64,000 nucleotides of DNA, taken from positions 558,001 through 622,000 of the forward strand of contig OX337233.1 in NCBI GenBank assembly GCA_946965045.2, in the 5' to 3' direction. The position numbers were made by a program, and so were the translations under genes. Shown in pieces: positions 7,150 to 62,649 of this stretch. The notes beneath the pieces were generated by a model. The model was not told the origin of the DNA. It saw only the letters and a list, made by a program, of their open reading frames with translations, and ran no database searches. The DNA comes from Epithemia pelagica (taxonomy: Eukaryota > Protista > Bacillariophyta). The number at the start of each line of letters is the position of its first letter. Position 1 is the first letter of the stretch.

Positions 7150-7282
7150 GTGTTAAGTGGAGTACACAGGAGTGGAACCACTTGGGTGAATGGAGGTGGA
7201 TGTAGCATGACGTGAACCACCTAGGACGAACGACAAGCCACAAGAGTTGCAAACCAACATTGCAATGGTGCAAGGTTGATTT

Positions 7283-7290
7283 GAGAGGAG
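7283..7290 (+). other. Polypurine tract
   Basis: GAGAGGAG immediately before the 3' LTR. Confidence 0.8.
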
Positions 7291-7453
7291 TGTTGAAATT
7301 GTGGCCTATATTTGGCAATGAACGACAAATGTGTCTGAGCTACCACGGCTATGTGGCCGAATTCGGTGAGAGCTGTGTACGACTCCCACCTGTAAACCAA
7401 GGTAGCTTTATCGATAATGAACGTATAATCTTTCTGATAGCGAACTTTTAGCA
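7291..7453 (+). repeat. 3' LTR (163 bp)
   Basis: Identical to 823-985. Confidence 0.97.
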
Positions 7454-7528
7454 CGACCATGACCAAAAGTGGTTGATCAAACTGAGAAAGATCCTTTTCT
7501 TCGTTTTGTCTTTGTGCAAGAGATAACC

Positions 7529-8920
7529 ATGTCACTCTGAACGCGCGTCGTCGTCTTCAACGCCATCGCATTCACGACGACTCGTATGGTAGGGTGATAT
7601 TCTAAAGGAATCATCCACACCATCCTTTCAGAGTTTTGGCCATGACAAAAACAACGATTATTACAAGGCAAAGACGACAGCGAAAACCAGCAGCAACAGC
7701 AACAGTAAGACCAACAAGAAAACGTCGCAAACGCAAATCGAGCCATCGTCCTCCAATACAACAACGACCTCAAGACAACGATTGCGTCGCTTGACTCAAA
7801 CTAATTCGTTGCCATCGTCGTCCTTGTGGTGGGTACGCTATCTCATGTTACTGGCTCAATATCGTGCAACAAAAATACTGACATGGTGCAACATGGATTG
7901 GATGCGGCCTACAGTCGGTTGTCTTGCGAACCTGGGATGCCGACTTGGCAATTTCAAACCTCTCGTTTTGTAGATATGCAAGGGTGGTTTTTGGAGTATT
8001 GTCGCCACGGTCCTGGCACCACCTCTGGCCCTAATCATGTGTTGTGAATGGTATGATTCGGATCAAACCTTGCTGGAATTGCGCAAGAAATGCGGCAACA
8101 AGGGACCCTCATCACACAACACCAAACCTCGGAACAACATGACTTGTTCTGTAAAGAACGATTTGGAATTCTGGTCTAGGAACAATTGCAAACCGGCTTT
8201 GAGTATATTGTCCATGGCGAACCTCGTTCAGTCCCAATCACAGTCATTATAACACCCAGAACAACAATAAGCTATCCTCATGGGTTTCGCGACCCTCCCC
8301 CATGTTTCTCCAACGACAAGAACAACCAATGGTGGTTCCAATTTCAGCTTGGTGGATACCTTGAATTCACAGTTCTTGAGGATTGTGGTGACCAATCAAA
8401 CCACTGTGAACCTTTCGAACGAACGTGGTGGAACCAGCTCAAATTGTTACATCAATCTTGCTGCCCCTCTTGCCGTCGGTGGGTGTCACCGCCTTTTTGA
8501 CACCCACTCTGTCTTCTTTGTGCTTGATTCAACCATTGGTCTAGACGGGGTTGTTGGATACAATGAACAATCTCGAAGCGGGCTTTGTGACACTTTTGGT
8601 GCCGACCAATCAGGCCTTTGAAGTCTTGAATGTCAATAGCTTGACGTTGACTTGTGTCTTGGACCCAATGTGTATCGTGGCGGTACCTTGTTTCGAGAGA
8701 GCATTACCAGTTTCATGGCCGGCAACCAAGGCAATCCCATTCAACTTACCAGTGATTCGGCTACCGATTGGATCTTTTCCGCGACACAATTTCCGCAATC
8801 TCTCGGCCGTGGACCGGACCGAACCGGATTTGCCTCTCACCTGCGCCAATTTCGTCAATACCCAAGTCGTCGCCCTTCGAGGGGTCATTCACTGGGATCG
8901 ATGCCGTCTTGTTTCCATAA
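7529..8920 (+). pseudogene. FAS1 (fasciclin)-domain gene copy F1, frameshifted
   Basis: FAS1 H1-like VTLLVPTNQAF (about 8590) and H2-like GVIHW...DAVL (about 8880) lie in broken frames; paralogue of 13318-14352. Confidence 0.75.
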
Positions 8921-26405: not shown

Positions 26406-27374
26406 CTACCTGTGTGGTGGATGAAACAGAGTGGTCATTTTCATGGGGCGCTGTGGAATCACCGCCACTCGACACAAACAGAGAACAAAGCGGACGATCC
26501 AATGGTGATGGTAGTTCGTGTGGTCCGTGTTGTTGCCTTTTTGAAACCGAAAATCGGTGTCGTCAAAGTCCCAATGCCCGATGGACTGCAACAAGCTGTC
26601 GTCCGTCGGTGCGAGACTCCGTCTTCCACCGACAGCATAGAGATGCGACCCCACAACGGCGAGTCCTAATTGATGCCGACGTACGGTAAGGGGTGGACCT
26701 TGCAACACCCTCCCGTGAACAATATCTAGAATTTCCACGGACGACACGAGTCCTCCCGATTTCTGACGTCCCCCCACGACCACCATATATCGATCGTGCA
26801 CCGTGGTCGCAGCGCATCCGTACCGGGCCTCCATCAAGCGACACTGCATCGTTTCCCAGGTGGTCGTCTTGTTGCTTGGGACGTATTTGTTTGGATCTGA
26901 TGAAAGCGTAGTAGTTATTGTTGTTGTTGCCCATAGCATCAAGTCGGCAATGGAAATGCGTTCAATGGTATCCCATGTGATAAATCCAAGAGAAATGCCT
27001 CCCAGAGCGTAGACGTGACCACGACAGACGACGGCCGCCAGTTCTCGTCTTGCGACAGTCATGTTGGGTCCCTGTTTCCATTCGTGTCGAGTACTAGTCT
27101 TCCAACAAGGCAACAGTATGACCGTATTGGTGGCATAGTCATTGGCGTGTTTGCCGCCCATGAGCACCACCAGCTGGTCGTGTTGAGGATTGTACGGCGC
27201 CTGAACAACAACCGATACATGGCCATAGCGCCGTCCACCTGCCAGGGGAGGCCATTGATTGGGATCAGTCTGCCATTGCGCTTGTGATTGTTGTTGTTGT
27301 GATGATGAAGATGAGCCCAGAAAGGCAAGGCCCGACAATTCCGCTTGCTGGTGATGATAATTCTCCTCATTCAT
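26406..27374 (-). CDS. Type-B Kelch protein KB1 (4 blades; about 400-bp deletion of blades 5-6 versus KB2)
   Basis: QQAELSGLAF...QW...WPPLAGGRRYGHVSVVV is homologous to the type-A N-terminus; blades VLMGG, YALGG, VVGG, YAVGG. May be a pseudogene. Confidence 0.65.
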   Translation of the reverse strand: MNEENYHHQQAELSGLAFLGSSSSSQQQQSQAQWQTDPNQWPPLAGGRRYGHVSVVVQAPYNPQHDQLVVLMGGKHANDYATNTVILLPCWKTSTRHEWKQGPNMTVARRELAAVVCRGHVYALGGISLGFITWDTIERISIADLMLWATTTITTTLSSDPNKYVPSNKTTTWETMQCRLMEARYGCAATTVHDRYMVVVGGRQKSGGLVSSVEILDIVHGRVLQGPPLTVRRHQLGLAVVGSHLYAVGGRRSLAPTDDSLLQSIGHWDFDDTDFRFQKGNNTDHTNYHHHWIVRFVLCLCRVAVIPQRPMKMTTLFHPPHR

Positions 27375-27689
27375 GGCATGATATCCTTTGAAGCGTCCTG
27401 TGCTGGCCATTGGGATCGCTGTGGGAGGCCAATTCCCAGAAACTATTCCTTCCAAAATGTGGCGGTGTCTCGCTCCACGATTCGAAAAGTATAAGGCGTG
27501 ACTGTTTTCTGTTCACCTCGTCCGGCGTTCTGCACAGCTCAATATGCTGTGTTCGCAGTGCCAGACGGCGCCATGCACGCCGGGCATGGCGTATGATCAC
27601 TCGCAGGTCAACGGCTGTACGCGTGCCGAGATGTTGCAGGCCATCACTGTGACGTGACGAATTGCGACCGGCACCGAACCGAGAGCGTA

Positions 27690-27710
27690 CACTGCAAGTC
27701 ATTTCTAGAC
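27690..27710 (+). repeat. Left TIR
   Basis: cactgcaagtcatttctagac; first 16 nt perfect with the right end, 19/21 overall. Confidence 0.93.
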
Positions 27711-27968
27711 TGAGTAACTATTCTGTTAACCGAATATTAATTAATCGATCCAGCCCTAACCGATTAAGGCGAACGACACTTCCCTCCATTTTTATCCAGT
27801 TACAACGACCGAACATTTCCAATTCGATTTATTGCTAACCGAATACCAAATAAACAAAATTTCAAACCGAATAATTTATAAATCGGTCGATACTAACTGC
27901 TTGAAAGTTAAGTCCGTTCACATCTAACCGTTTAATCGTCTTCGTTATATTTTTATCCTTTTGTGGTT

Positions 27969-29288
27969 TTATTTTCTCTCGTCACATCGTCGACGTTTAC
28001 CATCGTCAGAAGCATCAGCAACACTACTTTCCTTTTTATCATTTTTCTCGGCATTCTCTTTTTCCGCATCATTGTTAAGATGTAGTCGTCGCTTGAGTGG
28101 TTTTTCACTGATCGATCCACCAACAGGGATAGAACGCACTCCCGATGACGAACTCGCATGTTTTCCGAAAAGGGAATTGAGATACAACAAGTCTTCATGT
28201 TTCTCAAAACTCAGAATCCCTCCATGGCAGGACATAACAAGACTCTGACGAGATACAACCGAATTAGCCACTGTATGGATATATTGAATGCATTCATTCG
28301 GAAAATAATACCCAACCTTCAACGACACTTCTCGTTGAGTAGAAGTAGTTGATAGACCGCCCAGTTTGTTCAATTCCTTGTCCATTTTTTTTTGTAGATT
28401 GTATAATCCAATCCAAATACTACGATGTAGACATCGTCTTGGAACCACAAGATTCGATGGATGGTCATACCCAGGATGTGTATTTGGGAAACCCATAGTA
28501 ACCGTAGGTGGGAGTTCCTCGAGGCGATGTCTTGTAGGCTTCACATAAGAATTGATCGTGTTATGCCAAAATCTGACGACATACACGTTGCACATTCCTT
28601 CTGCCCATGCATTACCACTTCTCTCCAACTCACGTAGAGTAAAAACAAAAACCCGAAATAGCAACTTTACTTTGTAGTCTGGTTTTTCCCCATCAATCCA
28701 CAGAACTTCTCTTGATTCGTAAACTTCATCGTTCTTAGATCCACACCCGTTCTGTATCTTGTTGCGCGTGTGTGATGGAAGATTTGGATACCACTTCAAG
28801 CGATTACTGCGAAACAATGGAAGAAACAGCCGGATTCTGATAGTGGTTTTTTCTGAATCTGGATCATCATCTTCATCTTTCACCCGTTCCTCCAACCGCG
28901 CGATAGTTATTTCCTTCGAATCCTCGTCGTCCTCTCGCAATTGAATGGCCATAAACGAGCCAATCCGGATATTATCCATTAATGTCCAATCGAAATACGG
29001 GACGTCGTTCACATAAACGGTATTTCCATACCCTGGCGACGAAGACGAAGACGAAGACGAAGACGACGAGGACGACACAGACATATTTTTGGATTTCTGC
29101 TCACCACACAGTTTTACACCTACACATCCTTTATATATACCATGTGTGTGGTCCTCTCTCTCTATAACCCGCGTTCTCATGCTCATCCGGCGTGCATATA
29201 TCGTTAGTCTGCAATATTGTATGATATTCCAAACCACTGACATCCAATGATTGTTTTGATTTTGTCTATGTATTTTACTAACAGACAT
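27969..29288 (-). CDS. BAH (bromo-adjacent homology) domain protein, transposon cargo
   Basis: IRIGSFMAI / ITIARLEE / IRIRLFL / DEVYESREVLWID / RVFVFT..E / NVYVVRFWHN follow the order and spacing of BAH strands. True start uncertain (29288 or a downstream ATG). Confidence 0.72.
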   Translation of the reverse strand: MSVSKIHRQNQNNHWMSVVWNIIQYCRLTIYARRMSMRTRVIEREDHTHGIYKGCVGVKLCGEQKSKNMSVSSSSSSSSSSSSSPGYGNTVYVNDVPYFDWTLMDNIRIGSFMAIQLREDDEDSKEITIARLEERVKDEDDDPDSEKTTIRIRLFLPLFRSNRLKWYPNLPSHTRNKIQNGCGSKNDEVYESREVLWIDGEKPDYKVKLLFRVFVFTLRELERSGNAWAEGMCNVYVVRFWHNTINSYVKPTRHRLEELPPTVTMGFPNTHPGYDHPSNLVVPRRCLHRSIWIGLYNLQKKMDKELNKLGGLSTTSTQREVSLKVGYYFPNECIQYIHTVANSVVSRQSLVMSCHGGILSFEKHEDLLYLNSLFGKHASSSSGVRSIPVGGSISEKPLKRRLHLNNDAEKENAEKNDKKESSVADASDDGKRRRCDERK

Positions 29289-29877
29289 GCGTATGGTCTA
29301 AGTTGACTCATACGCCTGACAACACATGTCCTAAGAAACACAATAATACTTATATATCGTTTCAAACCATGGGGTTATATATATATCAATATTCAACTCT
29401 TTCAATGACCCTTATGTAATTTTACACCATACACCCATATTCCCCTATACGATAGGCCAGTTATGCAATATTTGTATAATATTCATATTCATACTCCTTC
29501 GTTTGAAACGATTTTACGTAGAGCAGTTTTCATGCTCCCACTCAAATCAAATAACACAACTTCTAGGTAGTAAGACGAATATTGTTAAATTAAATCAGTA
29601 TAACAAATATTACAAAAGAAGTCATTCACGGTTTTGAACTCATTTGGTCTTGCAACAACAATCAAAAGTAAGCCGACCCTTCTTTCCTTTCGTGCATATT
29701 TCGCCTCACTTTTTTCAAGGACCTCGTCTCGTCTCTCTCATCTCTCTCTCGTTTCCTTTTTTTCACATGCTTATTTTTAAGATCACATTCTGTATCGTTT
29801 GTTTCAAGTTATATCCTTTTCTTCTACTAAACAGTCGTTGAAGCATTCCATTCAACAGTCATACAACAGTCCATCTA

Positions 29878-31323
29878 ATGGCGGACGATTTTGCAAATAA
29901 CTGGGGTGCGTCGTATGTTCTACCCGATTTACGCCGGCAGTCAACGAAACGTAAAGCAGTTGATTCGTATATATCATCCGACAAGAGATCAGAGATCGAA
30001 CTTCGTGCGATTATCAAGAACACTACACATGGATATTTCAATTTAGAGAAACTTACTCCCAATGGATCGGACGCCAATTTGTTCGCTATTACAAGCTTAT
30101 GCAATGGGGACACTCATGGTGTCCTCATTGGCTGTGGAAGTTATGTCGCTGGAGATTTGGGTCCTTTACAACCCTGGTCTACCGCCGACTTCCGCGTCAA
30201 TGAAGGCCCATCTTACATTCATGAACCCACAAGCAATGATATCTCTGTCTCAGCACGGTCGAGGACCATCGCCCTACCCTACTGCATTGAAGGTGTCATG
30301 GGAGAACGAGGACAAATTTCCTACGAGGATTTATGTCTCCAAGGTCTTCACAAGAGATGTATTTACCAAGAAGCAATCGGCCAGCGCGTGACTGTTCTTT
30401 TCCTCGAGCTACTGTTGGCCTCGAATGGTTGCACATTGAGCAATCGATTTCTAAAAAGAGTCGGTCTGTTGTCGAAGCATCATGATTTCCATATCATCGT
30501 TGATGAAATACTCACCGGTGCTCGAATGGACACAATGCTTTTAACAATGAATGGACCAAAGGAATTTATTGACCGCGTGGCTTTCGTCACACTCGGTAAA
30601 TGGTGTAAATGCGGTGTGGTTTTGTCTGGATATCACTATGACTCACATCTACAATCGTCTAAAAACCGGATGGACCCACGTGGAGTAACAACAGGTCTCA
30701 ATTGCTCTAATCCCTTGCCTTATTTTCGCAAAGTCCAGGAACTTCTTCCAACAATTCCAGATCGACGAACAAGATGCATCTCTAAGTTTACGTCCATGAG
30801 CTCCCATGAAACCTGGGGCATTGGTCTTATCATCTTCATCCCTCGCTGTTGCCTCGGTACCAGAGCTGGAACGAAAAACAGGTTGCTACCATTACTGAAT
30901 AACACGCCGCCAGATAACATCAAGTCGATACCGGAACCAACATGGAGCAGAGCTAGTGTAAGTCGCCGCACTCTTTCTTGTGTACTAAAATGGACAAATC
31001 AAGTCTCGTTCATTTCAAGTAACTTCTCTCTGGATTCAAAGATACTGTGTCTTTATCACATGATTTGCTTTCTTGTTGAGCACCATGTACCTGGTGGTTG
31101 GATCACATCGTCTGAATTACACGAGCAAGTGACAAAGGCAAGTGACGAACATGAACAAGAAAGTCTACGATTCACAACCTCTATCCTCCGTGCTATCGAG
31201 AGATGTGGGTATCTCAGGAAACAAATGAAAACCCACCGTCGACTACATGGATGGTCCATTATATCTGACCGTCTCAACTATCCATGGCAAGTTACTCCCA
31301 TTGAACATTCCCCGAACGAATGA
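29878..31323 (+). CDS. Class-III PLP-dependent aminotransferase-fold protein with putative C-terminal winged helix, transposon cargo
   Basis: NGSDANLFAI, VLFLELLLASNG, HIIVDEILTGAR, VTLGK (putative PLP Lys at 30598-30600), TWGIGLII; tail ITSSELHEQV...ILRAIERCGYLRK...GWSI. Confidence 0.75.
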   Translation: MADDFANNWGASYVLPDLRRQSTKRKAVDSYISSDKRSEIELRAIIKNTTHGYFNLEKLTPNGSDANLFAITSLCNGDTHGVLIGCGSYVAGDLGPLQPWSTADFRVNEGPSYIHEPTSNDISVSARSRTIALPYCIEGVMGERGQISYEDLCLQGLHKRCIYQEAIGQRVTVLFLELLLASNGCTLSNRFLKRVGLLSKHHDFHIIVDEILTGARMDTMLLTMNGPKEFIDRVAFVTLGKWCKCGVVLSGYHYDSHLQSSKNRMDPRGVTTGLNCSNPLPYFRKVQELLPTIPDRRTRCISKFTSMSSHETWGIGLIIFIPRCCLGTRAGTKNRLLPLLNNTPPDNIKSIPEPTWSRASVSRRTLSCVLKWTNQVSFISSNFSLDSKILCLYHMICFLVEHHVPGGWITSSELHEQVTKASDEHEQESLRFTTSILRAIERCGYLRKQMKTHRRLHGWSIISDRLNYPWQVTPIEHSPNE

Positions 31324-31385
31324 TTCTCGCAACGTCTCCATACGAAGTATATATATCTATAGTAATATATAAAAGCCAATATAGT

Positions 31386-34300
31386 TCAACTATAGTCCAC
31401 ATTATTCGTGATAGCTTCGATGGGGACCAGTCGATATGATCCATCATTCCACCTTTCTCTCCATAGATTCCCAACGGTGTAGTATGAGTTAATAAAATTC
31501 CCAGTCGTTGACGATGTCAGTGGTATAAGGAGCAATACTTCTTGCACAAAATCCTTCTTCATCTCAGCAACAGACTGGAATAGACGTGTTTCGCTTGTCC
31601 CCAACACCGGTGCCACCCAACACATTGTTTGTGTCCATTCTCCTATTTCATCTTGGAAGCGTAATCGGCACAATTTTACCAGGCGCCTGGTATTACCAGT
31701 TTCTTCACCAATGGGTCTATATGCTATGTAAGCATTGTTATCACGGCCAAGTACACCACAAAGAATACCATTCTCGGATAAATGGTCCTCCATTTCGGAA
31801 CGGCTTTTGAAGATCCTTATCATCGAATCACTTTCCCTATTCATTCGAGACTTCTCCTTTGATGCATCTGCTTGGTTCAGCATCCACTGTAGTGTGTCGT
31901 ATTGGTATAGTTTTCGCATTGTTATGGTGGTCCAATCAGCTGTGCTCCTCTTAATGGATAACAATGGTTTGACTTGTTGAATCTTTCTCTCGCCCTCCCA
32001 CCCCCCTTCCCAGTGTAGTATTGCTGGACCCATCTCGGAATGAGCTGTAGCGCACGATAGGATACCCAAAGAATTGGACTTGGTAAAATTGGGATTTTTC
32101 TTCTGTCGATCAGACTCGAAGAGAATGAGATCTACCTCCGCCATATGATCCATATACAAGTGGATATAATCTTCCAAGTTACCGATGGTCTTGCAATTTG
32201 TCATTATCCGTCCCAAGCACATGGCCATGCTGGTTATAAAGCGGCTAAGTGAGCGCCATTCGTCCTTGTACCCTGGAGTGCGGAACCATCGACTGTCACA
32301 TATACTTGGAAGCGACATCAGAAACCTCCAAATTCTTGCACCGAGTAAATAATTCTCGGACACCCAAACTCCAGTACCCCAAGAGGACGTGGATAGTGGC
32401 TGCGCACAAAAGAACTTCGTCGCCCGCAGCGACCTGATGCCCTCCAGCACTTTGTTCACTTGCTTACCAAAAGGAGCAAGACGATTGTATTTCCCAAGCC
32501 ATTTCGACACCATCTCCAAATTACTTTTCGCGTGGCCCAAAAAGAGCATGTGCATTGGAGCGAAATGGCATTTGGCCAGTGCTCCAATCTCCTTCCAACT
32601 TGTTGGGAAGCATATATCTCCTTCGGAAGTCGTGCATTGTTGGTATATTGACTCTATCATGCGGTTTGTAAGTGCGCAAGTCTTTAAGAACGCATTGAAA
32701 TTTCCTTTCGTCCAGAATTTTTTCCTCGAACCATCGCTCTGTATTGTCTGATGGGTCACGTTGTGACATGCGAACAGAACAGCTTGTTTGAGCCAACTAA
32801 CCGTAAGCTTAACGGATCGAAGAAGGATTCTTTTGGTCGGTTTCTTTCTTGACTTCTTCCGACGTTTCTTTCGAACCTGGCCAACGACGTCATTGCTGCT
32901 ATCCACCACGGTAACAACATCATCGGTCACCTCGGAAGAAGGATCTGTCTCGCTCACTGGTATGTCCTCGATACGGTGCCACAAATCGCGGAGAATTGGG
33001 GGCTTAGGAGCATTTGGCGATTGATCATAGACCTGCGGGTAATCGGCTGGTGCTACGAAAACGAAGTTCGGGTCTTCGATTCTCCAGTCAGAGCATGACT
33101 CGCATATATCACGAGCCGTGTTATCAACTTGGAATCCACATTGCAGACGCTGGAGTCGTCTTTTCTTACACTCTGTACACGATGGTAAATGGTTTATTTG
33201 GCAAGTACCATCTACATTGGTAGCATACCCCCAAAAAGCCGAATACGAACCATTGTGGTCTCCGATACGGAATATAGTTGTCCGTTCAGGTCGATCGACA
33301 GAGATCAACAGCTTCCCCACCATAACATGGATAACTTTTTTCAATCCTCCATGATATAGTCGGAGACCTGTCGACGATAATGTATCCAATTCTTCGATCA
33401 TTATCTCTTCAATCTTGTTGTGGTCTTCTCCTTTACTCGATAGACCAATGTAGTAAGTTGTTGATCCACGCACATTCGTTGATTGATGAGGAGGACATAG
33501 TGTATACGTATTACACCAAACTTGATTCCGCGATGATTTCGTGTTGTTTGGATCGAAATCATCGCGCCATTCGCGAAGCCATAGATACAATGTAAATTGA
33601 TCTGAACCGTTACCACTTCTTTTTTGTTCTTCTTTCATGGAGAACAACAGTGACTTGGCACATTGTGTGCTAGAAACACTCGGAACAGCGTTGTCTGGAG
33701 CAATTTGCAATTTTGCCATGAAATCAAAATCATCGTACTCGGTAGCTTTACCTATCTCGTTGGCCAATAAATCGTACAGAGAAACATATGAGTGACTGCC
33801 ATCCGGCGTCGTTTTGGGAATTGGGTGTGGCAGATTGGGAAGAATCGCATTCTTTCCTGTTAAAAAGAACCGATCAAAATCTTCATTTGTTGATGGAAGT
33901 CTGATGTTTTGGAAAATGGATAACTGGCTATGGCCACTATTTCCTGCAGTGGTCAAAATTTCAGCAAATATCTTCTTCTGTTGTTCTGTTAGTTGTACCA
34001 ACAGAGACGAAATCTTTAGACAAAATATTGATTCCTCTGTAGAAACTTGTGCGGAACTCAGACCAAAAGCATTGGCAGTCAACCAGCGTATACCACTGCC
34101 TTTCTCTTTTGCTTCTTGAATGAGATACTTTGGCGTAGTCGATTTTCGGTCAAACCCCATTTGGAATAGTTCCATTTCAGTCGGAATTTGGTCTGTTGCA
34201 TCCAGTATCGGTTGTGGAGATGAAATTTGACTCATTTGGTCGGAATCAAAACAGTCTAAGCCATTTTGGTCATCAACAGGCGGTGAAGATTGATGAATAG

Positions 34301-34601
34301 ACTCTTGCTCCACCTTCTTTTGATGGAATGACGTCTGTGAGTGTCGTTGGACGTATTTCCACTGGGCAATGTACCCCGAAGACTTCCCAGTCCTCTCTTG
34401 ACTTTGGATACAAAGTCGACAACAAAAGAAATTGGTCGACGAAACCCGGCAATTGGCAATGGAATTGGAACAAGAACCTTCATAAAGATATGTCTCCATA
34501 CCGGGAGGAGATGTTTTGACTGGGAGACAGACAACTTCCATGGAGCATTCCCTACAAAGAACGGTGATCGATCGGCTTTCATTGGGTTGGTCATTACTCA
34601 T
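31386..34601 (-). CDS. EnSpm/CACTA-type (Transposase_21/Tnp2-like) DDE transposase, about 1071 aa
   Basis: WRDDFDP...QVW, ELDTLSSTGLRLY, LLISVDRPE, HNG, PMHMLFLG, GPAILHWEGGWEGERK; N-terminal CxxC...H...H zinc-finger-like segment. First ATG 34601 (ORF track starts at TTG 34664). Confidence 0.85.
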   Translation of the reverse strand: MSNDQPNESRSITVLCRECSMEVVCLPVKTSPPGMETYLYEGSCSNSIANCRVSSTNFFCCRLCIQSQERTGKSSGYIAQWKYVQRHSQTSFHQKKVEQESIHQSSPPVDDQNGLDCFDSDQMSQISSPQPILDATDQIPTEMELFQMGFDRKSTTPKYLIQEAKEKGSGIRWLTANAFGLSSAQVSTEESIFCLKISSLLVQLTEQQKKIFAEILTTAGNSGHSQLSIFQNIRLPSTNEDFDRFFLTGKNAILPNLPHPIPKTTPDGSHSYVSLYDLLANEIGKATEYDDFDFMAKLQIAPDNAVPSVSSTQCAKSLLFSMKEEQKRSGNGSDQFTLYLWLREWRDDFDPNNTKSSRNQVWCNTYTLCPPHQSTNVRGSTTYYIGLSSKGEDHNKIEEIMIEELDTLSSTGLRLYHGGLKKVIHVMVGKLLISVDRPERTTIFRIGDHNGSYSAFWGYATNVDGTCQINHLPSCTECKKRRLQRLQCGFQVDNTARDICESCSDWRIEDPNFVFVAPADYPQVYDQSPNAPKPPILRDLWHRIEDIPVSETDPSSEVTDDVVTVVDSSNDVVGQVRKKRRKKSRKKPTKRILLRSVKLTVSWLKQAVLFACHNVTHQTIQSDGSRKKFWTKGNFNAFLKTCALTNRMIESIYQQCTTSEGDICFPTSWKEIGALAKCHFAPMHMLFLGHAKSNLEMVSKWLGKYNRLAPFGKQVNKVLEGIRSLRATKFFCAQPLSTSSWGTGVWVSENYLLGARIWRFLMSLPSICDSRWFRTPGYKDEWRSLSRFITSMAMCLGRIMTNCKTIGNLEDYIHLYMDHMAEVDLILFESDRQKKNPNFTKSNSLGILSCATAHSEMGPAILHWEGGWEGERKIQQVKPLLSIKRSTADWTTITMRKLYQYDTLQWMLNQADASKEKSRMNRESDSMIRIFKSRSEMEDHLSENGILCGVLGRDNNAYIAYRPIGEETGNTRRLVKLCRLRFQDEIGEWTQTMCWVAPVLGTSETRLFQSVAEMKKDFVQEVLLLIPLTSSTTGNFINSYYTVGNLWRERWNDGSYRLVPIEAITNNVDYS

Positions 34602-35201
34602 TGCACTATAGCGATGGAACAGGGTGGGGACAAAGGAAATCCTGCAATGGCGAATCACTGTCAATGAATGTACTTCTGAGATCTTTTGGATGTCTCGTCG
34701 TTCATTGTCGGTATTATGAGTTTAATATCTCGGAACCACAATCCCCCACACGACGCGATGACTCTCATCCCCCAAAACGATATGTGACATGATTGATACT
34801 TATTACTTTCATCTCACGGTATCCAAAATCATGTCTGATAGGTACTCAAAATTTGAAAATACATAGGCATATGGCTTAGTTCATTAACAGACGGTACTCT
34901 GATTCAGGATACGGTAATCGACCAATTAACTAAAGTGACATACTTTAGTCTCGTGAAACAATGGTACTTAGACAGCCAAGTACCGTTCGTGACTCTGAGA
35001 AACCGTTGCTCGTTCTTTGTTTCGAATGAAAATCAAACACGATGGTATGTGGTTCTCGTCCTTTTTTCTGTGCGGCATGTGTGATGTTCTTGATTCTTTG
35101 GCAACACCCTTTTTTCAACTTCGTCTCATTGCCATGGACGTATCGCTTTGATTCGAAATATACCATCCGCATTACAAAAGCTAGGTTTGCCAATTGATAG
35201 T

Positions 35202-38075
35202 ATGGTAAGTTGGATGCATATCCTTAGGTTATAGTGGTATTGTCGAAAGACTCAACGAATGTTTCTGTATTTTCTGTGCAGTCTCTTATTTCTCATATCA
35301 ATGGAGGTGTGTCATCTCTTAATCGTCAGACAGAGGCAACGAGTATTCCATTGAATAACGCCATACCACAAGACAGTACCGGCAATCAACTTGGTAATCA
35401 AGAAGCAAGACAAACTGAACCTAATCCTATTCGCAATATGGAGACTCCGAATGTCCAAGATTCACACACGTCGACAGGATCAACTTCCCCACGTGTATTG
35501 TTGGAATATCCAAGAAATTTTTTCCATCAGGAGACAGGTGTGGGTCCATCAACTTCGGAAGAAGCAGCACTGTTGTGGATATACAGGAAAGGAAGGCGAA
35601 CTGACGGATTGGCCGATACTGAACCTCCAGATGGAAACTTAATGCTGCAAGAAATAAAAGAAATCAGAGACAGTCTCCGTGCGCATATACAGAGAACTTA
35701 TGAAAATGGTCTTCGTGATCGTGCAAAAGAGTTGGATATCCAGATGCCCGGAAAAGCAGCTTTTCCGGTGCACTTGTCTGATTTCCGCAAAATTCTAAAT
35801 GAACTTCCATGTACTTTGGCTAATCAACGAATGGTTTTTGAGTTGGTACTGCAGTTTCACAAGGATCGACATTGGTTGGCCCATGCTATTGATCGGTGGT
35901 TTGACAAAGAAGGAATGACATTGGCCCCGCTGCATAAGCCAAAGTTTGTGAACGGAAAAAGAACCCGCATCTGCCCAACGGATAGAGGTGGCTTCTCGGC
36001 GGTTGCAAGATCTGCAAAATCTGCCATTGTTGGAGGGCTTATGGCTCCAATGTTGCGTAATGCTGGATGGAGTGTTTCCTTGACGAAAAATCAAGGAAAG
36101 AAGCACAATTATGAGACAAAGGTACAATACAACCAGTCGCAGTCGTTCTACGTGGTCACCCAAGAAAAAAAGGTACGTCGTCAGAATTGGGATTCTATAC
36201 GTTATTCCAAGAATGCTATGCCTAATTTGTTGTATGTCTGTCAAGGAAACAAACACGGACTCGAATGTAATCGAAGTCGATAGTGCTACGCCCGATTTTG
36301 AACGGGCCAGTCAAATTTTTACGGAAACGATTGGAGTACGAATTGACGAAGCGTGCGTTAGAAAGTTGTGGGCGAGTTGCTTTGTCCCGAAGCAACTGAA
36401 TGCTATCAAAGTAAATATGACGGGCAAAGAGTTAGTCGTTCAACGTAATCCGGCCGAAATATCGGATCTTACTGAAAAAGGAAACGAAGAATCAGGGGAT
36501 GTATCCCGCATTCCAGTACGGCATCCAATTCAAGATGATCGAGCAACGAGGGTAATCAGGAGTGAGAATGTCAATAAGGAAACACAACTTATTGAAATGG
36601 CTCGTAAAAATTCGACGCCAGAGGAGATAAGTCCTTCGAATGGCGGGGCGATTTCAACAAACGCAGCGATTTCAACAAACGCATCAGTTCCATTGGGTGT
36701 GGCTGCCTGTGAGATAGAGGAAAATCACAATGAGGAGATAGCCGAGCACGAGTCAATTGATTCAGAGAGTATAGATGTGTCACAACCTTTGTTCGAAGAC
36801 GTAGCAAATGCAATCAACAGAGATAACACAGTTGCCATGCAGAAGATGTCGGAAACACGTAAGGACTTTGAGCAAGAATCAGATGATTCGATTGTTATGG
36901 CAATGGGAACGACAGATGGTCATGCCGGTAAAGACAGAGAGAGGAATTCTGATACACAAGATAATACAAATCTTTCGAAGACAGCTCGATCTAATGGTAA
37001 AAATGTACAAGATCAAGAATCGTTGGTTACGCAGGTACAGGAGAGCGGGGATTGTGCTCTAACGACACAAAACAGAAACAGCCAGGGGCAAACAACACTC
37101 CTTTCGAAAGAAGTACAGGAGAGCGGGGGTTGTGCTCTAACGACACAAAACAGAAACAGCCAGGGGCAAACAACACTCCTTTCGAAAGAGAGTGCCCATA
37201 GACAGGATTCACTGGATACGCAGAAGAATGAGAGCAGTGACGTTGCTCTACGGAATAAAAAGGAAAAAAATCAGGTACTGGCCATGCTCGTGGATGGGCA
37301 ATCTCAGTTAGATGAAAGATTGAACACTGTTCTTCCGTTGGAACATGAAAATGTCCAGGAACAAACAAGAACCGAGAATACTCGCGACTCGTCGAAAGGT
37401 GCAAGAGAGGTAGACGTGGGCAAGGTGCGTATATTGTGACAAGGTTTTCTTTGTTTGTGAACAATCGTGGTGAACTGATCTTTGGTGTGTTTGGTAGCAG
37501 GGCAAAAGTTCCCCTCCAAAAAAGAGAAAGGTACGGTTGTATTTTTGTCTTTGTTGAGAGAATGAATCAGTTCTCTCATTATAGTTTCTTCTTTGTGTGA
37601 AAACTTCTGAGTACAGGGTACGGATTGTGAACAGAGAAAACGACAGTCCACTAAACGACCCTCCCCACCGAAACGAGTCTCCCCACGGAAACAAGCCAAG
37701 AAGCATCAGTGTGCAGGAAGTCCGAAAGAGGGAGAGCAATGTGTACAATGTCCAAAAGAAAATCATGATCTGGGCCTTCTGATTCGGCAAGACACGTCGA
37801 CATATTTCAAAGAAGACTATTACAATCGAAATACAAATTGGCCGTCGACATGTGTAAAATGTAACCAAAGGTTCGGAGGCCTTGGTAAAAAGGTAAATCA
37901 AACAAATCCGGTAATGGCTTGCAAAAACGCATGTGTGACGGGTCATCCATGTAAACATGCATATTGTAACGAATGTTACGTGAATTTGATGAGAGAGAAA
38001 ATGAAACAAGACGACATGGAAGCAGGAGCAGGTACGAGATCAATGAGGACACGTAATAAATCAAGAGTGGTATGA
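35202..38075 (+). CDS. Multi-exon transposon gene ending in a PHD/ADD-like Cys/His zinc finger
   Basis: Phase-0 GT-AG introns 36173-36245, 37425-37500 and 37531-37616 join the frames; last exon 37617-38075 encodes CVQC...H...CVKC...CKNAC...HPCKHAYCNEC. The 5' end is uncertain (ATG 35202 plus intron 35205-35281, or ATG 35438). Confidence 0.72.
37035..37190 (+). repeat. 78-bp (26-aa) in-frame tandem duplication
   Basis: VQESG(D/G)CALTTQNRNSQGQTTLLSKE x2, starting at 37035 and 37113. Confidence 0.9.
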
Positions 38076-38586
38076 GGAAAAAGGTGTGGCGTGATGGTAT
38101 AAAGAGATATATGAGAGTTGGTACTACCAAATATAAATTTGTAATAGTTCTTTCGTCAACCTCTCCTCTTTGTGGTGTGTCTGTCTCTATGTATAAATAT
38201 ATAGATCTCGTCTCTCTCTCCATCTCTCATGTCCCGCGACGATCCATATCACACAAAAACGATGTGGTAACTGAATAGTTTAACAGAATAAAGAGTTCAA
38301 TATAATCGGTTGATTGCTTCGATTAATATTAACCGGTTAGATGATGCCTCTGATGACTGACTAATAATGAGAGGTGACAGATTAAATATCTTATCGACTG
38401 AATAGCTTGAGCAGTTAGGCGTTCCGGGTTAACTGATTATATTTTACTTACCGATTATTAACTGGATTGGTGATTTTCTGTCAGAATAAGAGAATATGGT
38501 TAACCGAATGAGGTTTGGGGGGCTGGTTTTTATAAAGAGTTTTAAACTGTCACTATTGACTGTATAAGTTAAACTGTTGGTAAACG

Positions 38587-38607
38587 GTTTGGAAATGACT
38601 TGCAGTG
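38587..38607 (-). repeat. Right TIR
   Basis: gtttggaaatgacttgcagtg, reverse complement of the left end. Confidence 0.93.
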
Positions 38608-38970
38608 TAACCGAAGAGACACGGTGCGAGGATCAAAAGCGTCGGACGATGAACATGTGGGATCCCAAACGTTGGTGGATACATGAAACACACTGTGTCT
38701 CAACGAAGCTCAACGGTTCGTGGAGTTACTGCGTAGGCGATTGTGAATGAGTGCTTCACGTCAAAAGTTGACGAGATGGCTAGGTAGCAATGTTGCGTTC
38801 TTCGAATGTGGGATCCAAAAAATGTAGGTGGATATTTGACACGGTTCGTGGAGACACTACGCCGGAATGAGAGCTTTGCATCAAAAGCTGATATGCCAAA
38901 GCAATGTTTCACATCACAGCAGATCATTTTCTTCGACACACTTTCTTTTGTTTCCGATCATCAAAGGAAG

Positions 38971-40746
38971 ATGCAAGAACAAGCAAGATTGTCCAATCTT
39001 GCCTTTCCTGACACCAACAAAGATGAAATGCCACAATGGAAGTCCGACTCATGGCCGCCGCTTTTGGGTGGATGGCGTCGGTATCATGCATCGGTTGTTG
39101 TGAATGAAGAGAAAAAGGGACAACAGACAGTCGTTGTCATTGGAGGACAAAAAGCAGAGTTGCTCGTCACAAATTCGGTGTTGTTGATGGATTTGGAAAG
39201 GTGGCGAAAAGGTCCAAGCTTGAATCAACATCGTGGTGGACTTGCAGCAGTGGTTTGTAATGGCTCTGTGTACGCAATGGGGGGACGCTGCGATGGCCAA
39301 CTTCTGGATTCAATCGAGCGGATTGATCTTTTGGATTTGTTGAAATCACCATGTGCTACCAACAACAAGACGCATTGGAAGACATTGACTTGTACATTGT
39401 CCACTCCAAGAGACGGATCTCAAGCTGCTGTGGTACATAATCGTTTTATTGTGGTCGTCGGTGGAGATAATTACAGCTTCCTGTCGTCGACTGATATTAT
39501 TGATACCACAGGACAAAATCAACACATTGTCATTCCAGGCCCTTCCATGACGGTTCCTCGATATTTGTGTGGAATGGCTGTTGTTGACCATCGCATCTTT
39601 GTCATTGGTGGGATGAAGCAAGGTTCCAAATTAAACTCTGTCGAATACCTAGACTTCAGTGAAGTTTCTCATGACAACAATGAGGATGTGCATTTCAGCT
39701 TTCCCTCATCGTTTCAATGGAATGTCCACAAGGATCTGGTCCTTTCTGTTCCTCGGTATGCACACGCTGTTGCGAAAGTCGGGACGTGTCTCATTGTGAC
39801 AGGAGGTGATTCCGAGAAAACTTTGAAGTCAGTTGAAGTATTGGACACGAAGCGCAACGTGGTGTTCAACTTACCTGATATGATCGTGGAGCGGAAGGCT
39901 CATAGTGCGGTTTCATTTTTGGACCGAATTGTGGTCATTGGAGGCACGAAGAAGACATGTGAGTCGCTTGCATCGATTGACATGAAGGAAAACACCAAGG
40001 TACGATCTTGTTATCACAAGCCACTGAAGGAACCGCTTTCCTACATTCTCACAACCGTTTCGTGCTGTTTCTTCGCGCAGAGTCTCCAGAACAGGTATTC
40101 GTGTCGTGCTGAGCTCGACATGGAACTTGAAAAAATGAAGAGTAAGATTCAACTTGCAAATAGGCATCGCAGCAATGTCAAGGCGCTGCAAGAGGCCATT
40201 GAGGCGGAATCCTTGCTGCCTCTGATGGAATGGCTTCGTAACCACGACGACAAGTTCCGCTCTGTACATGAACTTCGAGCAGGTATTGACGAACTGAAAG
40301 GGAAATTGAGAGATATAGATAGTTTTATGGGGTGCCTACCAATTGCACGCAAGATTGAAAAACTACGACAGCTTGTCGACTGGAATGAGAGTTTTGGTGA
40401 TCAAAAGAACCTTACTGAACAAGAAGCAGAGCTTGAGGTTGAAGCCGGTTCAGTGACAGGAAAGGAAACACTGCTGGTGTCGGAACGTACCACTCGTGAG
40501 TTTGTCGACTTGAATGTCAGTTTTGGTGATGAAAAGAACCTTGCTGGTCAGAAAGCAGAAGATGAGTTCGAATTCGTATCGGTGACCGGAAACGAAACAC
40601 TACAAGTGTCCCGTCATTCGACTGATGATCTCTCGAATGTTTCTTATAACCCGGAAGAACGACTGATGAAACTGGAAGACATGATGGTTCAACTTTCTGA
40701 TCGGTTCGGTGTGCTTGAGAATCTAGTGCTCTCGAAGAAGAACTAG
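38971..40746 (+). CDS. Kelch + coiled-coil protein K6; probable intron 40000-40080 (81 nt, stop-free)
   Basis: Continuous ORF, six blades, two 43-aa tail repeats. Confidence 0.88.
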   Translation: MQEQARLSNLAFPDTNKDEMPQWKSDSWPPLLGGWRRYHASVVVNEEKKGQQTVVVIGGQKAELLVTNSVLLMDLERWRKGPSLNQHRGGLAAVVCNGSVYAMGGRCDGQLLDSIERIDLLDLLKSPCATNNKTHWKTLTCTLSTPRDGSQAAVVHNRFIVVVGGDNYSFLSSTDIIDTTGQNQHIVIPGPSMTVPRYLCGMAVVDHRIFVIGGMKQGSKLNSVEYLDFSEVSHDNNEDVHFSFPSSFQWNVHKDLVLSVPRYAHAVAKVGTCLIVTGGDSEKTLKSVEVLDTKRNVVFNLPDMIVERKAHSAVSFLDRIVVIGGTKKTCESLASIDMKENTKVRSCYHKPLKEPLSYILTTVSCCFFAQSLQNRYSCRAELDMELEKMKSKIQLANRHRSNVKALQEAIEAESLLPLMEWLRNHDDKFRSVHELRAGIDELKGKLRDIDSFMGCLPIARKIEKLRQLVDWNESFGDQKNLTEQEAELEVEAGSVTGKETLLVSERTTREFVDLNVSFGDEKNLAGQKAEDEFEFVSVTGNETLQVSRHSTDDLSNVSYNPEERLMKLEDMMVQLSDRFGVLENLVLSKKN

Positions 40747-59865: not shown

Positions 59866-62289
59866 CGGAGAACTAGTTGTCTTGGTCCATTTTGTGATGT
59901 TCGATGTATAGGCATAATACGATCACAAATTAATTTATGTCAAATTTCTACTTGTTTGATGCGGTTGGGCCCAAATCCCAAGTCGTCACTTTCGTGTAGA
60001 GCCGGATGCCATTAGGTGATCTTGAAGTCATCGATGGTTTCTTCTTTTGCTTTTGCAGCTACGTGTGAAATTCATACCTGCACAGATTCTTGTCGAGGCA
60101 CAGTGCCACAACAGTCAGCCAACGTGTGCACTTAAGCCCATTGACTATCCCCCATCACAAACTTAGACTCATATTCGACAACCACTCATTCTATCTCTAT
60201 TGTGTCATCCAGCATCCAGCATGTCTACGAATATAACCAAGATCTTGTGTTGCGTGGATCTAATGAGAAGATCCTTCAAGTGTGGTGCTATGGTGATTCA
60301 ATGACCACTCTTTATTACCCGTCGCCAATGCAAGACGACTGTATTCTTGTCTTAACTACATCCATTCCCTCCTTTGTTGTAGTAGTGTGGTAGTTAAATA
60401 CATTGAAGAGTACCACGGGTCCACCGTTTCTCATACCAAACGACATGTACAGACTCGTTGATGGAAAACATACTACTGATGAATGTGAACCCATCAAGGA
60501 AAATCTCGCCAGAATGTTTCGTATTCAAAATTATTTCTCTACCTGTGTGGTGGATGAAACAGAGTGGTCATTGTCGCGGGGTGCTGTGGAATCACCGCCA
60601 CTCGACACAAACAGAGAACGAAGCGGACGATGCAATGATGGTAGTTGTTGTTGAAGTAACCGTTGAAAGACGGCCGTATTCTTGTCGGTCAAGGGCAAGT
60701 ACTCACTCAAATCTTGACCCCAACCCGAAAGACACAAAATACCACCTTGGCCACCACTACTGTTGGAACAACAAGAAGATGAAGAAAGGATGACCATGTC
60801 ATGTTGGGATCACCCACATGTCAAACTGGGTCCAGTCCATACCGTGTGGCGTTAACGGAGCGTGATTCCCAAACTCGCCAATCCTGACATCCTTCCGAGA
60901 CAAGGAGACAAGATCCCACTTTTACCACAGCATGATTGTATCGAGGTTGGGTCAAGGCTAGCTTTGGGTGGATCCTCCAACTGTCCGAGAAGGAGGATTC
61001 ATTCGCTTTTGTAGTAGTAGTCGAAGGAGTCTCCTGGAGGTGTGTGTTGTCCTTGTTATTGCCTTTTTGAAACCCAAACGCGCTGTCGTCAAAGTCCCAA
61101 TACTCGATGGACTGCAACAAGCTGTCGTCCGTCGGTGCGAGACTCCGTCTTCCACCGACAGCATAGAGACGCGACCCCACAACGGCGAGTCCCAATTGAT
61201 GCCGACGTACGGTAAGGGGTGGACCTTGCAACACCCTCCCGTGAACAGTATCTAGAATTTCCACGGACGACACGAGTCCTCCCGATTTCTGACGTCCCCC
61301 CACGACCACAATATATCGATCGTGCACCGTGGCCGCAGCGCATCCGTACCGGGCCTCCACCAAGCGACACTGCATCGTTTCCCAGGTGGTCGTCTTGTTG
61401 CTTGGGTCGTATTTGTTTGGTTCTGCCGGAAGGGTAGTAGTTATTGTTGTTGTTGCCCATATTATCAAGTCGGCAATGGTAATGCGTTCAATGGTATTCC
61501 ATGTGATAAATCCAAGAGAAATGCCTCCCAGAATGACATGTTTGTCATAGACCAATTCCTTGGTGGAAATATTGGTAATGCCGTGACTGGATTTTTCGCC
61601 ATTGGGCAATTTCAAGAGAGGATCAAAGTCCAGCCAATTCTCGTCTTGCGACATTCATGTTTGGTCCCTGCATCCATTCGTTTCGAGTTCTAGTCTTCCA
61701 ACAAGGCAACAGTATCACTGTATTGGTGGCATAGTCATTGGCGTGTTTGCCGCCCATGAGCACCACCAGCTGGTCGTGTTGAGGATTGTATGGTTCCTGA
61801 ACAACAACCGATGCATGGCCATAGCGCCGTCCACCTGCCAGGGGAGGCCATTGATTGGGATCAGCCTGCCATTGCGCTTGTGATTGTTGTTGTTGTTGTG
61901 ATGATGAAGATGAGCCCAGAAAGGCAAGGCCCGACAATTCCGCTTGCTGATGATGATAATTCTCCTCATTCATGGCATGATATCCTTTGAAGCGTGCTGT
62001 GCTGGCCATTGGGATCGCTGTGGGAGGCCAATTCCCAGAAACTATTCCTTCCAAAATGTGGCGGTGTCTCGCTCCACGATTCGAAAAGTATAAGGCGTGA
62101 CTGTTTTCTGTTCACCTCGTCCGGCGTTCTGCACGGCTCAATATGCTGTGTTCGCAGTGCCAGACGGCGCCATGCACGCCGGGCATAGCGTATGATCACT
62201 CGCAGCTCAACGGCTGTACGCGTGCCGAGATGTTGCAGGCCATCACTGTGACGTGACGAATTGCGACCGGCACCGAACCGAGAGCGTAA
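59419..62289. repeat. Segmental duplicate of 25273-27689 (continues as 62289-62890 versus 38608-39200)
   Basis: Collinear Kelch tail, spacer, type-B Kelch and upstream block; contains the empty TA site of the DNA transposon. Confidence 0.9.
60531..61973 (-). pseudogene. Type-B Kelch copy KB2 (disrupted by a replaced segment at about 61531-61632 and later frameshifts)
   Basis: ORFs 61623-62054 and 60821-61654 are two halves of the KB1-like protein. Confidence 0.72.
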
Positions 62290-62649
62290 CCGAAGAGACA
62301 CGGTGCGAGGATCAAAAGCGTCGGACAATGAACATGTGGGATCCCAAACGTTGGTGGATACATGAAACACACTGTGTCTCAACGAAGCTCAACGGTTCGT
62401 GGAGTTACTGCGTAGGCGATTGTGAATGAGTGCTTCACGTCAAAAGTTGACGAGATGCCTAGGTAGCAATGTTGCGTTCTTCGAATGTGGGATCCAAAAA
62501 ATGTAGGTGGATATTTGACACGGTTCGTGGAGACACTACGCCGGAATGAGAGCTTTGCATCAAAAGCTGATATGCCAAAGCAATGTTTCACATCACAGCA
62601 GATCACTTTCTTCGACACACTCTCTTTTCTTTCCGATTATCAAAGGAAG

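Follow-up and report, generated by a model that had tools for sequence, protein, structure and literature searches.

The 64,000-bp window analyzed here (positions 558,001 to 622,000 of contig OX337233.1, assembly GCA_946965045.2, from the diatom Epithemia pelagica) contains a transposon of 10,918 bp at 27690-38607, with CACTG...CAGTG ends and a duplicated TA. Besides a transposase-like gene, the element carries a complete gene at 29878..31323 (+ strand) for a protein that we call AT-wH, for its aminotransferase fold plus winged helix. AT-wH is a conserved second core protein of the element, in which a class-III aminotransferase fold is joined through a linker helix to a winged helix whose wing is basic. 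The gene encodes 481 amino acids in a single intact open reading frame (ORF) that begins at the first ATG and needs no intron, and full-length homologs exist. The start Met is backed by relatives, 15 of 24 homologs sharing the same M-x-D-D start, and the shared opening can be followed on as M-x-D-D-x-A-N-x-W-G. Contigs of up to 509 kb, assembled from genomic DNA sequencing runs, differ from the window copy of AT-wH at five sites, of which three are synonymous and two give S125P (nt 30250, codon 125) and C324R (nt 30847, codon 324). Since Arg324 is the family consensus, the window copy holds the derived Cys. When AT-wH and the transposase are taken together, 7 of 12 differences from the run contigs are synonymous.

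What kind of protein is AT-wH? The initial annotation had recognized a series of motifs in class-III aminotransferase order, and all of them lie where it placed them: NGSDAN at residues 62-67, LFLELLLASNG with Glu177, IVDEILTG at residues 207-214 (nt 30496-30519), TLGK with Lys241 (codon at 30598..30600, + strand), and WGIGL with Trp313. A word-indexed search recovered 33 relatives of AT-wH, and an exhaustive profile search of proteins from genome and metagenome assemblies, clustered at 50% identity, recovered 592 clusters at E<=1e-3, of which 269 reach E<=1e-30; most of their representatives are 440-500 amino acids long. Matches in such numbers place the motifs far beyond chance.

The class-III pyridoxal 5'-phosphate (PLP) fold proposed from those motifs is upheld by structure prediction, structure searches, and profile comparisons alike. 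The AlphaFold2 (AF2) monomer model of AT-wH has a mean per-residue confidence (pLDDT) of 83.9 and a predicted template modeling score (pTM) of 0.87, and the top 50 Foldseek matches to it are all class-III enzymes. Aligned with hhalign, a profile of 146 family members matches Escherichia coli GabT, BioA, ArgD, and HemL at a Prob of 98.5 and an E of 1.7e-14, residues 1-370 of the family spanning GabT 42-426. Every match of the family profile in the PDB is a class-III enzyme, and the Pfam model PF00202 is matched by 17 of 24 relatives at E<=0.01 (best E 3.4e-9). On the strength of these models, the PLP domain is predicted to adopt the class-III (fold-type I) aminotransferase fold, with its core at residues 35-355 (29980..30942, + strand). 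Compared with canonical class-III enzymes such as GabT and the lysine epsilon-aminotransferase of Mycobacterium tuberculosis (PDB 2cin), AT-wH, a transposon-encoded protein, lacks the first ~40 residues of the fold, has an additional linker helix and winged helix, and scores below threshold in Pfam.

Searches of the AlphaFold database (AFDB) clusters and the ESM atlas returned only generic class-III proteins, at no more than 17% identity, and no close annotated relative. The best-recurring NCBIfam match is the peptide aminotransferase of daptide type, found in 20 of 24 members at scores far under the cut-off, which is a weak hint. Two further matches were rejected: MRPL35, from a single-sequence PDB search (E 0.19), is noise, and a Pfam SCO4226-like match at residues 398-438 (E 0.0016) lies below threshold and occurs in one member of 24.

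Does this fold still hold its cofactor? The hhalign alignment places the residues that contact PLP at positions equivalent to those of GabT: the Gly63-Ser64 phosphate loop on Gly111-Ser112, the stacking aromatic Tyr89 on Tyr138, Asp209, for the pyridine N1, on Asp239, and the predicted Schiff-base Lys241 on Lys268, together with Glu177 on Glu206, Arg216 on Arg247, and Thr271 on Thr297. Among the 146 members, Lys241, Asp209, Glu210, Glu177, Gly184, Arg216, and Trp313 are conserved in 100%, and Tyr89, Gly63, and Gly87 in 99%; Ser64 and the Ser/Thr at 271-272 vary more than the other cofactor residues. The residues that handle the substrate tell a different story. GabT Arg141 is replaced by Gly92, Glu211 by Asn183, Gln242 by Leu212 (where members of the family have Leu or Met), and Arg398 by the invariant Trp313. 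The residue functions given here follow the GabT literature, in which Arg398 binds the alpha-carboxylate of the substrate, with Glu211 as a gate and Arg141 as a second arginine. This Arg/Glu/Arg set, which holds the carboxylate in canonical enzymes, is not retained in AT-wH. In total, 41 positions are at least 90% conserved, including the pocket residues Trp9, Asn183, and Trp313. Because the cofactor site is kept while the substrate residues are replaced, the family looks competent to bind PLP and looks unable to recognize amino or keto acids as canonical enzymes do. Judged by its residues, AT-wH itself probably binds PLP.

The segment that precedes the core begins with the motif M-A-D-D-F-A-N-N-W-G (29878..29907, + strand), in which N7, W9, and G10 are conserved at >=94-95%. 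It has low pLDDT in the monomer AF2 model, and hhalign pairs it with the active-site strand of GabT at residues 44-51, Trp9 standing opposite Ile50. A basic KRKA patch (residues 23-26, nt 29944-29955) lies within the disordered N-terminal segment; a KRK-type patch recurs in about half of the aligned relatives and may be a nuclear localization signal. On the other side of the core, a linker helix (residues 356-383, 30943..31026, + strand), assigned from the AF2 model and from conservation, contains Trp372, which is 99% conserved.

The linker leads to residues 384-465 (31027..31272, + strand), where the initial annotation had suspected a winged helix. Two models and the fold searches agree that it is one. 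In the full AF2 model this region follows the order H-(S)-H-H-S-wing-S of helices (H) and strands (S), a separate model of the domain from a 56-sequence alignment has the same topology (pLDDT 85.5), and the top 50 matches in a structure search with the C-terminal domain are all winged helices. Helix H3 spans residues 430-442 and the two strands 446-450 and 457-461, leaving between them the basic wing K451-T-H-R-R455, in which Arg455 is present in 127 of 146 members and for which the family consensus is K-G/T-K-K-R. H3 and wing together carry +5.7 net charges on average, and their sum is positive for 97% of members. Residues at the exposed positions of H3, the recognition helix, differ across the family, the wing is conserved, and the domain is kept in more than 90% of members. 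A basic, conserved wing would favor nucleic-acid binding without proving it, and we lean, from the modeled fold, toward the view that the domain binds nucleic acid. The Z-DNA-binding Z-alpha is among the best-fitting winged helices, but the H3 Asn and Tyr of its signature are not conserved, and we rejected a Z-alpha reading.

Some members are longer. P0022, P0050, P0056, P0070, and P0019 (645-669 amino acids), and the gene at 6077-8143 of locus L016, carry ~190 extra C-terminal residues in two repeats that resemble tandem Tudor/Agenet barrels. The resemblance comes from sub-threshold Pfam matches (PTM/DIR17 Tudor, 8.8e-5; Agenet; PWWP), and these extensions hint at a possible link to chromatin.

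That the gene lies on a transposon, as first proposed, is borne out by the ends of the element, by the TA duplication, and by an empty site. The left and right terminal inverted repeats (27690..27710, starting CACTGCAAGTCATTTC, and 38587..38607, ending ...GAAATGACTTGCAGTG) are perfect over their 16 outermost bases, 16 of 16, inward from 27690 and 38607. The duplicated TA occupies 27688..27689 on the left and 38608-38609 on the right. A single TA is present at a paralogous, uninterrupted insertion site at 62159..62430, which is ~99% identical to both flanks and has its junction at 62278-62303, inside a duplicated unit (~99% identical) of a Kelch array. This paralogous empty site proves both the boundaries of the element and the TA duplication, and it implies that duplication of the Kelch-array unit shortly preceded the insertion at 27689/38610. 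An allelic empty site, and thus a polymorphic insertion, had seemed possible from loose ends in three DNA runs; the paralog at 62278-62303 carries the same variant and explains these reads, so they give no evidence of polymorphism.

Repeats of TAACCGAWT type form a left subterminal cluster at 27727..27870 and a matching right cluster at ~38300-38510, concentrated within the terminal 300 bp at both ends. The exact motif occurs four times in the window, always subterminally. Its shorter form TAACCGA is found four times in the 600 bp of the ends, not at all in the 10.3-kb interior, and five times in the 53 kb outside.

Is AT-wH a passenger or a part of the element? In 8 of 8 independent loci fetched, whichever of the two genes served as seed, AT-wH and transposase occur together. 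The AT-wH-seeded loci L001, L002, L003, and L007 all contain a homologous transposase, fragmented in L007, and each of the transposase-seeded loci for which DNA was at hand (L013/L014, L015, and L016) has an AT-wH gene, complete or truncated at an end, which usually stands tail-to-tail with the transposase. For both genes, identities between pairs of loci fall in parallel down to ~35%, with a correlation (r=0.86) that comes partly from one close pair. Co-occurrence and co-divergence together mark AT-wH as a core gene and not an occasional cargo, and we hold with high confidence that it is a core accessory gene of the lineage. Measured against the 69%-identical copy in L001, the proportions of nonsynonymous and synonymous differences (pN/pS) are 0.20/0.78 for the whole of AT-wH, 0.17/0.82 for the core, and 0.27/0.78 for the linker plus winged helix; synonymous sites are saturated in this comparison (pS ~0.8). 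By this sequence measure, core and winged helix are both under purifying selection.

The transposase-like ORF (31386..34664, - strand) encodes 1092 amino acids from a TTG start and converges on AT-wH across a gap of 62 bp. Compared by language-model features, it scored 0.96, with 205 shared, against clusters that contain Plavaka or Transposase_21. Pfam scans of four transposases of the lineage found no transposase family, and one transposase of the lineage, P0244, gave a weak match to PF21743. A CxxC near residue 496 and an Hx4H near residue 700, placed by eye, are not strictly conserved in L002 and L003. The CMCT clade is characterized by CA..TG termini, duplications of 2-5 bp, and CxxC and Hx4H motifs, and includes the TA-duplicating ESTA (Kojima, PMC12730594). 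Like ESTA, Mirage, and Plavaka of that clade, our element has 5'-CA..TG-3' termini and a 2-bp TA duplication. The CxxC and Hx4H placed by eye in this copy would also correspond to the arrangement in the CMCT lineages, as they fall after what is presumed to be the second Asp and before the Glu; unlike in those lineages, the transposase matches no Pfam model. With its CACTG...CAGTG ends, TA duplication, and EnSpm/Plavaka-resembling transposase, the element belongs to an uncatalogued cut-and-paste lineage. Inverted repeats of the form CAC...GTG were also sought in L001, L002, L013, and L016, with nothing convincing found.

A third gene is conserved in the lineage. It is a 349-amino-acid ORF at 35234..36283 (+ strand) with homologs in L001 (15317-16348), L002 (102-1241), L007, L013 (7071-8417), and L016 (8742-9779), generally of ~350 residues. 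The protein has no Pfam match, its atlas matches (integrase SAM-like, ALOG, and QRICH1-type) are too weak to use, and it could be the true DNA-binding partner of the transposase. A neighboring gene of 439 amino acids is present in close copies of the element only. Kelch-repeat genes lie to either side of the element, at 26406-27455 (-) and 38806-40746 (+), and a Kelch gene also adjoins the 69%-identical copy (L001, 5184-6152). These neighbors could reflect an insertion preference for Kelch arrays or the mere abundance of such arrays. Locus L007 (ERZ25042306 ctg2243l) comes from another large assembly, in which the AT-wH cluster P0014 counts 41 members, many fragmentary. At this locus the adjacent transposase lies in at least five ORF pieces amid fragments of Copia-type retrotransposons; the broken transposase and the Copia surroundings identify this as a decaying copy.

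Where did the gene come from? A prokaryotic or viral origin had been raised on account of the missing introns, and the searches lend it no support, with one match in 185,579 prokaryotic species genomes and none on a viral contig of IMG/VR. The sole prokaryotic match is a full-length AT-wH on a 3.4-kb contig (L017, JAYSWT010000277.1, 3418 bp, GC content 0.43, no transposase on the contig) of a stream-metagenome assembled genome binned as bacterial, and it is probably misbinned eukaryotic DNA. The absence of introns itself says little about origin, since the Kelch ORFs of the host are also single ORFs.

What would a transposon do with an aminotransferase joined to a winged helix? The initial annotation had likened the protein to the bacterial MocR/GabR regulators. 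The likeness of design stands: like MocR, GabR, and PdxR, AT-wH combines a winged helix with a fold-type I PLP domain in which the Lys is retained, in reversed order. Homology does not. The family profile aligns with the E. coli MocR protein YdcR at a Prob of 0.9% (E 0.064), and the winged-helix profile at 0.5%, against 93-96% for the family profile with single GabT, HemL, BioA, or ArgD sequences. The bacterial proteins join an N-terminal GntR winged helix-turn-helix (wHTH) to an aspartate aminotransferase-like (class I) domain and sit in bacterial operons, whereas AT-wH joins a class-III domain to a C-terminal winged helix in a eukaryotic transposon. Sequence comparison thus indicates that AT-wH is not a MocR homolog.

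We favor, at a probability of roughly 0.4, the reading that AT-wH is a PLP enzyme tethered to DNA or chromatin, whose substrate is something else than an amino acid. The protein would bind PLP and dimerize as class-III enzymes do, and such a dimer would turn both of its winged helices toward DNA, with either the element's own TAACCGAWT-type subterminal repeats or chromatin as its likely target. PLP chemistry at that place, transamination or a related reaction, would then be directed at an amine or carbonyl other than that of a free alpha-amino acid, and the outcome may be an element that is aided in transposing or in evading silencing, as is thought for TET/JBP. We are drawn to an enzyme because the pocket is remodeled yet invariant, because TET/JBP offers a precedent, and because of the Tudor/Agenet-like extensions and the weak daptide-type match. 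The precedent is that fungal transposons of the CMCT clade and KDZ transposons carry TET/JBP genes, proposed to serve in escaping silencing by methylation (PMC12730594). As in those elements, a gene of enzyme fold adjoins an EnSpm/Plavaka-like transposase between CA..TG termini with 2-3 bp duplications; unlike the TET/JBP genes, which are Fe/2-oxoglutarate enzymes of sporadic occurrence, AT-wH belongs to a PLP superfamily and is universal in its lineage. Genuine catalysis by AT-wH on a substrate associated with DNA or chromatin is a tentative proposal, suggested by its sequence. A more specific version seems improbable, in which AT-wH is a chromatin- or DNA-modifying enzyme of PLP-dependent transaminase type, delivered by the winged helix (and, in some members, by Tudor-like readers) to a macromolecular amine or aldehyde, and erases or blocks the silencing marks of the element. 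Possible substrates would then be histone lysine epsilon-amines or oxidized methylcytosine or thymine aldehydes, such as the products of TET/JBP enzymes.

Several observations weigh against an enzyme. The window protein scores 12.4 bits with PF00202, below the Pfam gathering threshold of 30.5. Conservation of the PLP site is equally expected of a MocR-like sensor. Winged helices can also serve protein contacts, and the structure matches of the C-terminal domain include cullin WHB and ESCRT-II domains. Finally, a variable H3 suits element-specific DNA recognition of TnpA type no less well than a chromatin enzyme. The main alternative, which we regard as possible though somewhat unlikely, is a ligand-sensing, end-binding regulator that resembles MocR/GabR or the TnpA of En/Spm. 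A winged-helix dimer on the subterminal repeats would synapse the ends or control the promoters of the element, and an aldimine of PLP with a small amine would switch DNA binding without turnover. MocR and GabR show that a PLP-fold plus wHTH sensor is workable, the subterminal repeats are clustered in the element, a variable H3 beside a conserved wing is what co-evolution of H3 with element-specific repeats would produce, and a divergent intergenic region of 590 bp is shared by AT-wH and a neighboring gene. DNA-binding helper proteins are known from cut-and-paste transposons, and CACTA and Harbinger elements encode a transposase and a separate DNA-binding protein. Like En/Spm TnpA and the Myb-like protein of Harbinger, AT-wH is encoded by its element as a second protein next to the transposase; TnpA-type proteins bind subterminal repeats, our element has such repeats, and a dimer could bridge its ends. 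Neither TnpA nor the Myb-like protein has an enzyme-like domain, however, and no relationship of sequence or fold to AT-wH is known. A regulator of this kind is disfavored by the lack of MocR homology and by the 41 positions of at least 90% conservation, which, with Trp9, Asn183, and Trp313 among them, exceed what cofactor binding needs. The product of the 349-amino-acid ORF could be the DNA-binding partner instead, and we are aware of no metabolite-gated regulator in a eukaryotic transposon. An enzyme and a sensor stand nearly equal, and the evidence does not cleanly separate them.

Could the chemistry be irrelevant altogether? Class-III aminotransferases are obligate dimers, and the fold might be a purely architectural scaffold that brings two basic-winged helices together. 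We think this unlikely, because Lys241, Asp209, Tyr89, the Gly-Ser loop, and Glu177 are held at 99-100% despite an overall identity of ~35%. Least probable is metabolic cargo, an aminotransferase taken from the host that is of use to the host or passively carried and plays no part in transposition. Capture of host genes by transposons does occur, and the fold is that of a family of metabolic enzymes, but AT-wH is linked to a transposase and has co-diverged with it in every locus examined, has lost the carboxylate-binding arginines, has gained a domain of nucleic-acid type, and bears at residues 23-26 a patch resembling a nuclear localization signal; nor did the AFDB clusters hold a close relative outside transposons.

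Our search of the literature found no description of a PLP-fold gene as a transposon component or as an obligatory partner of a transposase. The AT-wH family is large, with at least 269 clusters at 50% identity and E<=1e-30, is strongly constrained, and has a remodeled substrate pocket. If the DNA- or chromatin-tethered enzyme that we favor is indeed catalytic, PLP chemistry would join the ways in which mobile elements manipulate DNA or chromatin. If AT-wH instead acts as a sensor, MocR/GabR would have in it their first counterpart from a eukaryote, one that evolved independently and couples transposition to metabolism.

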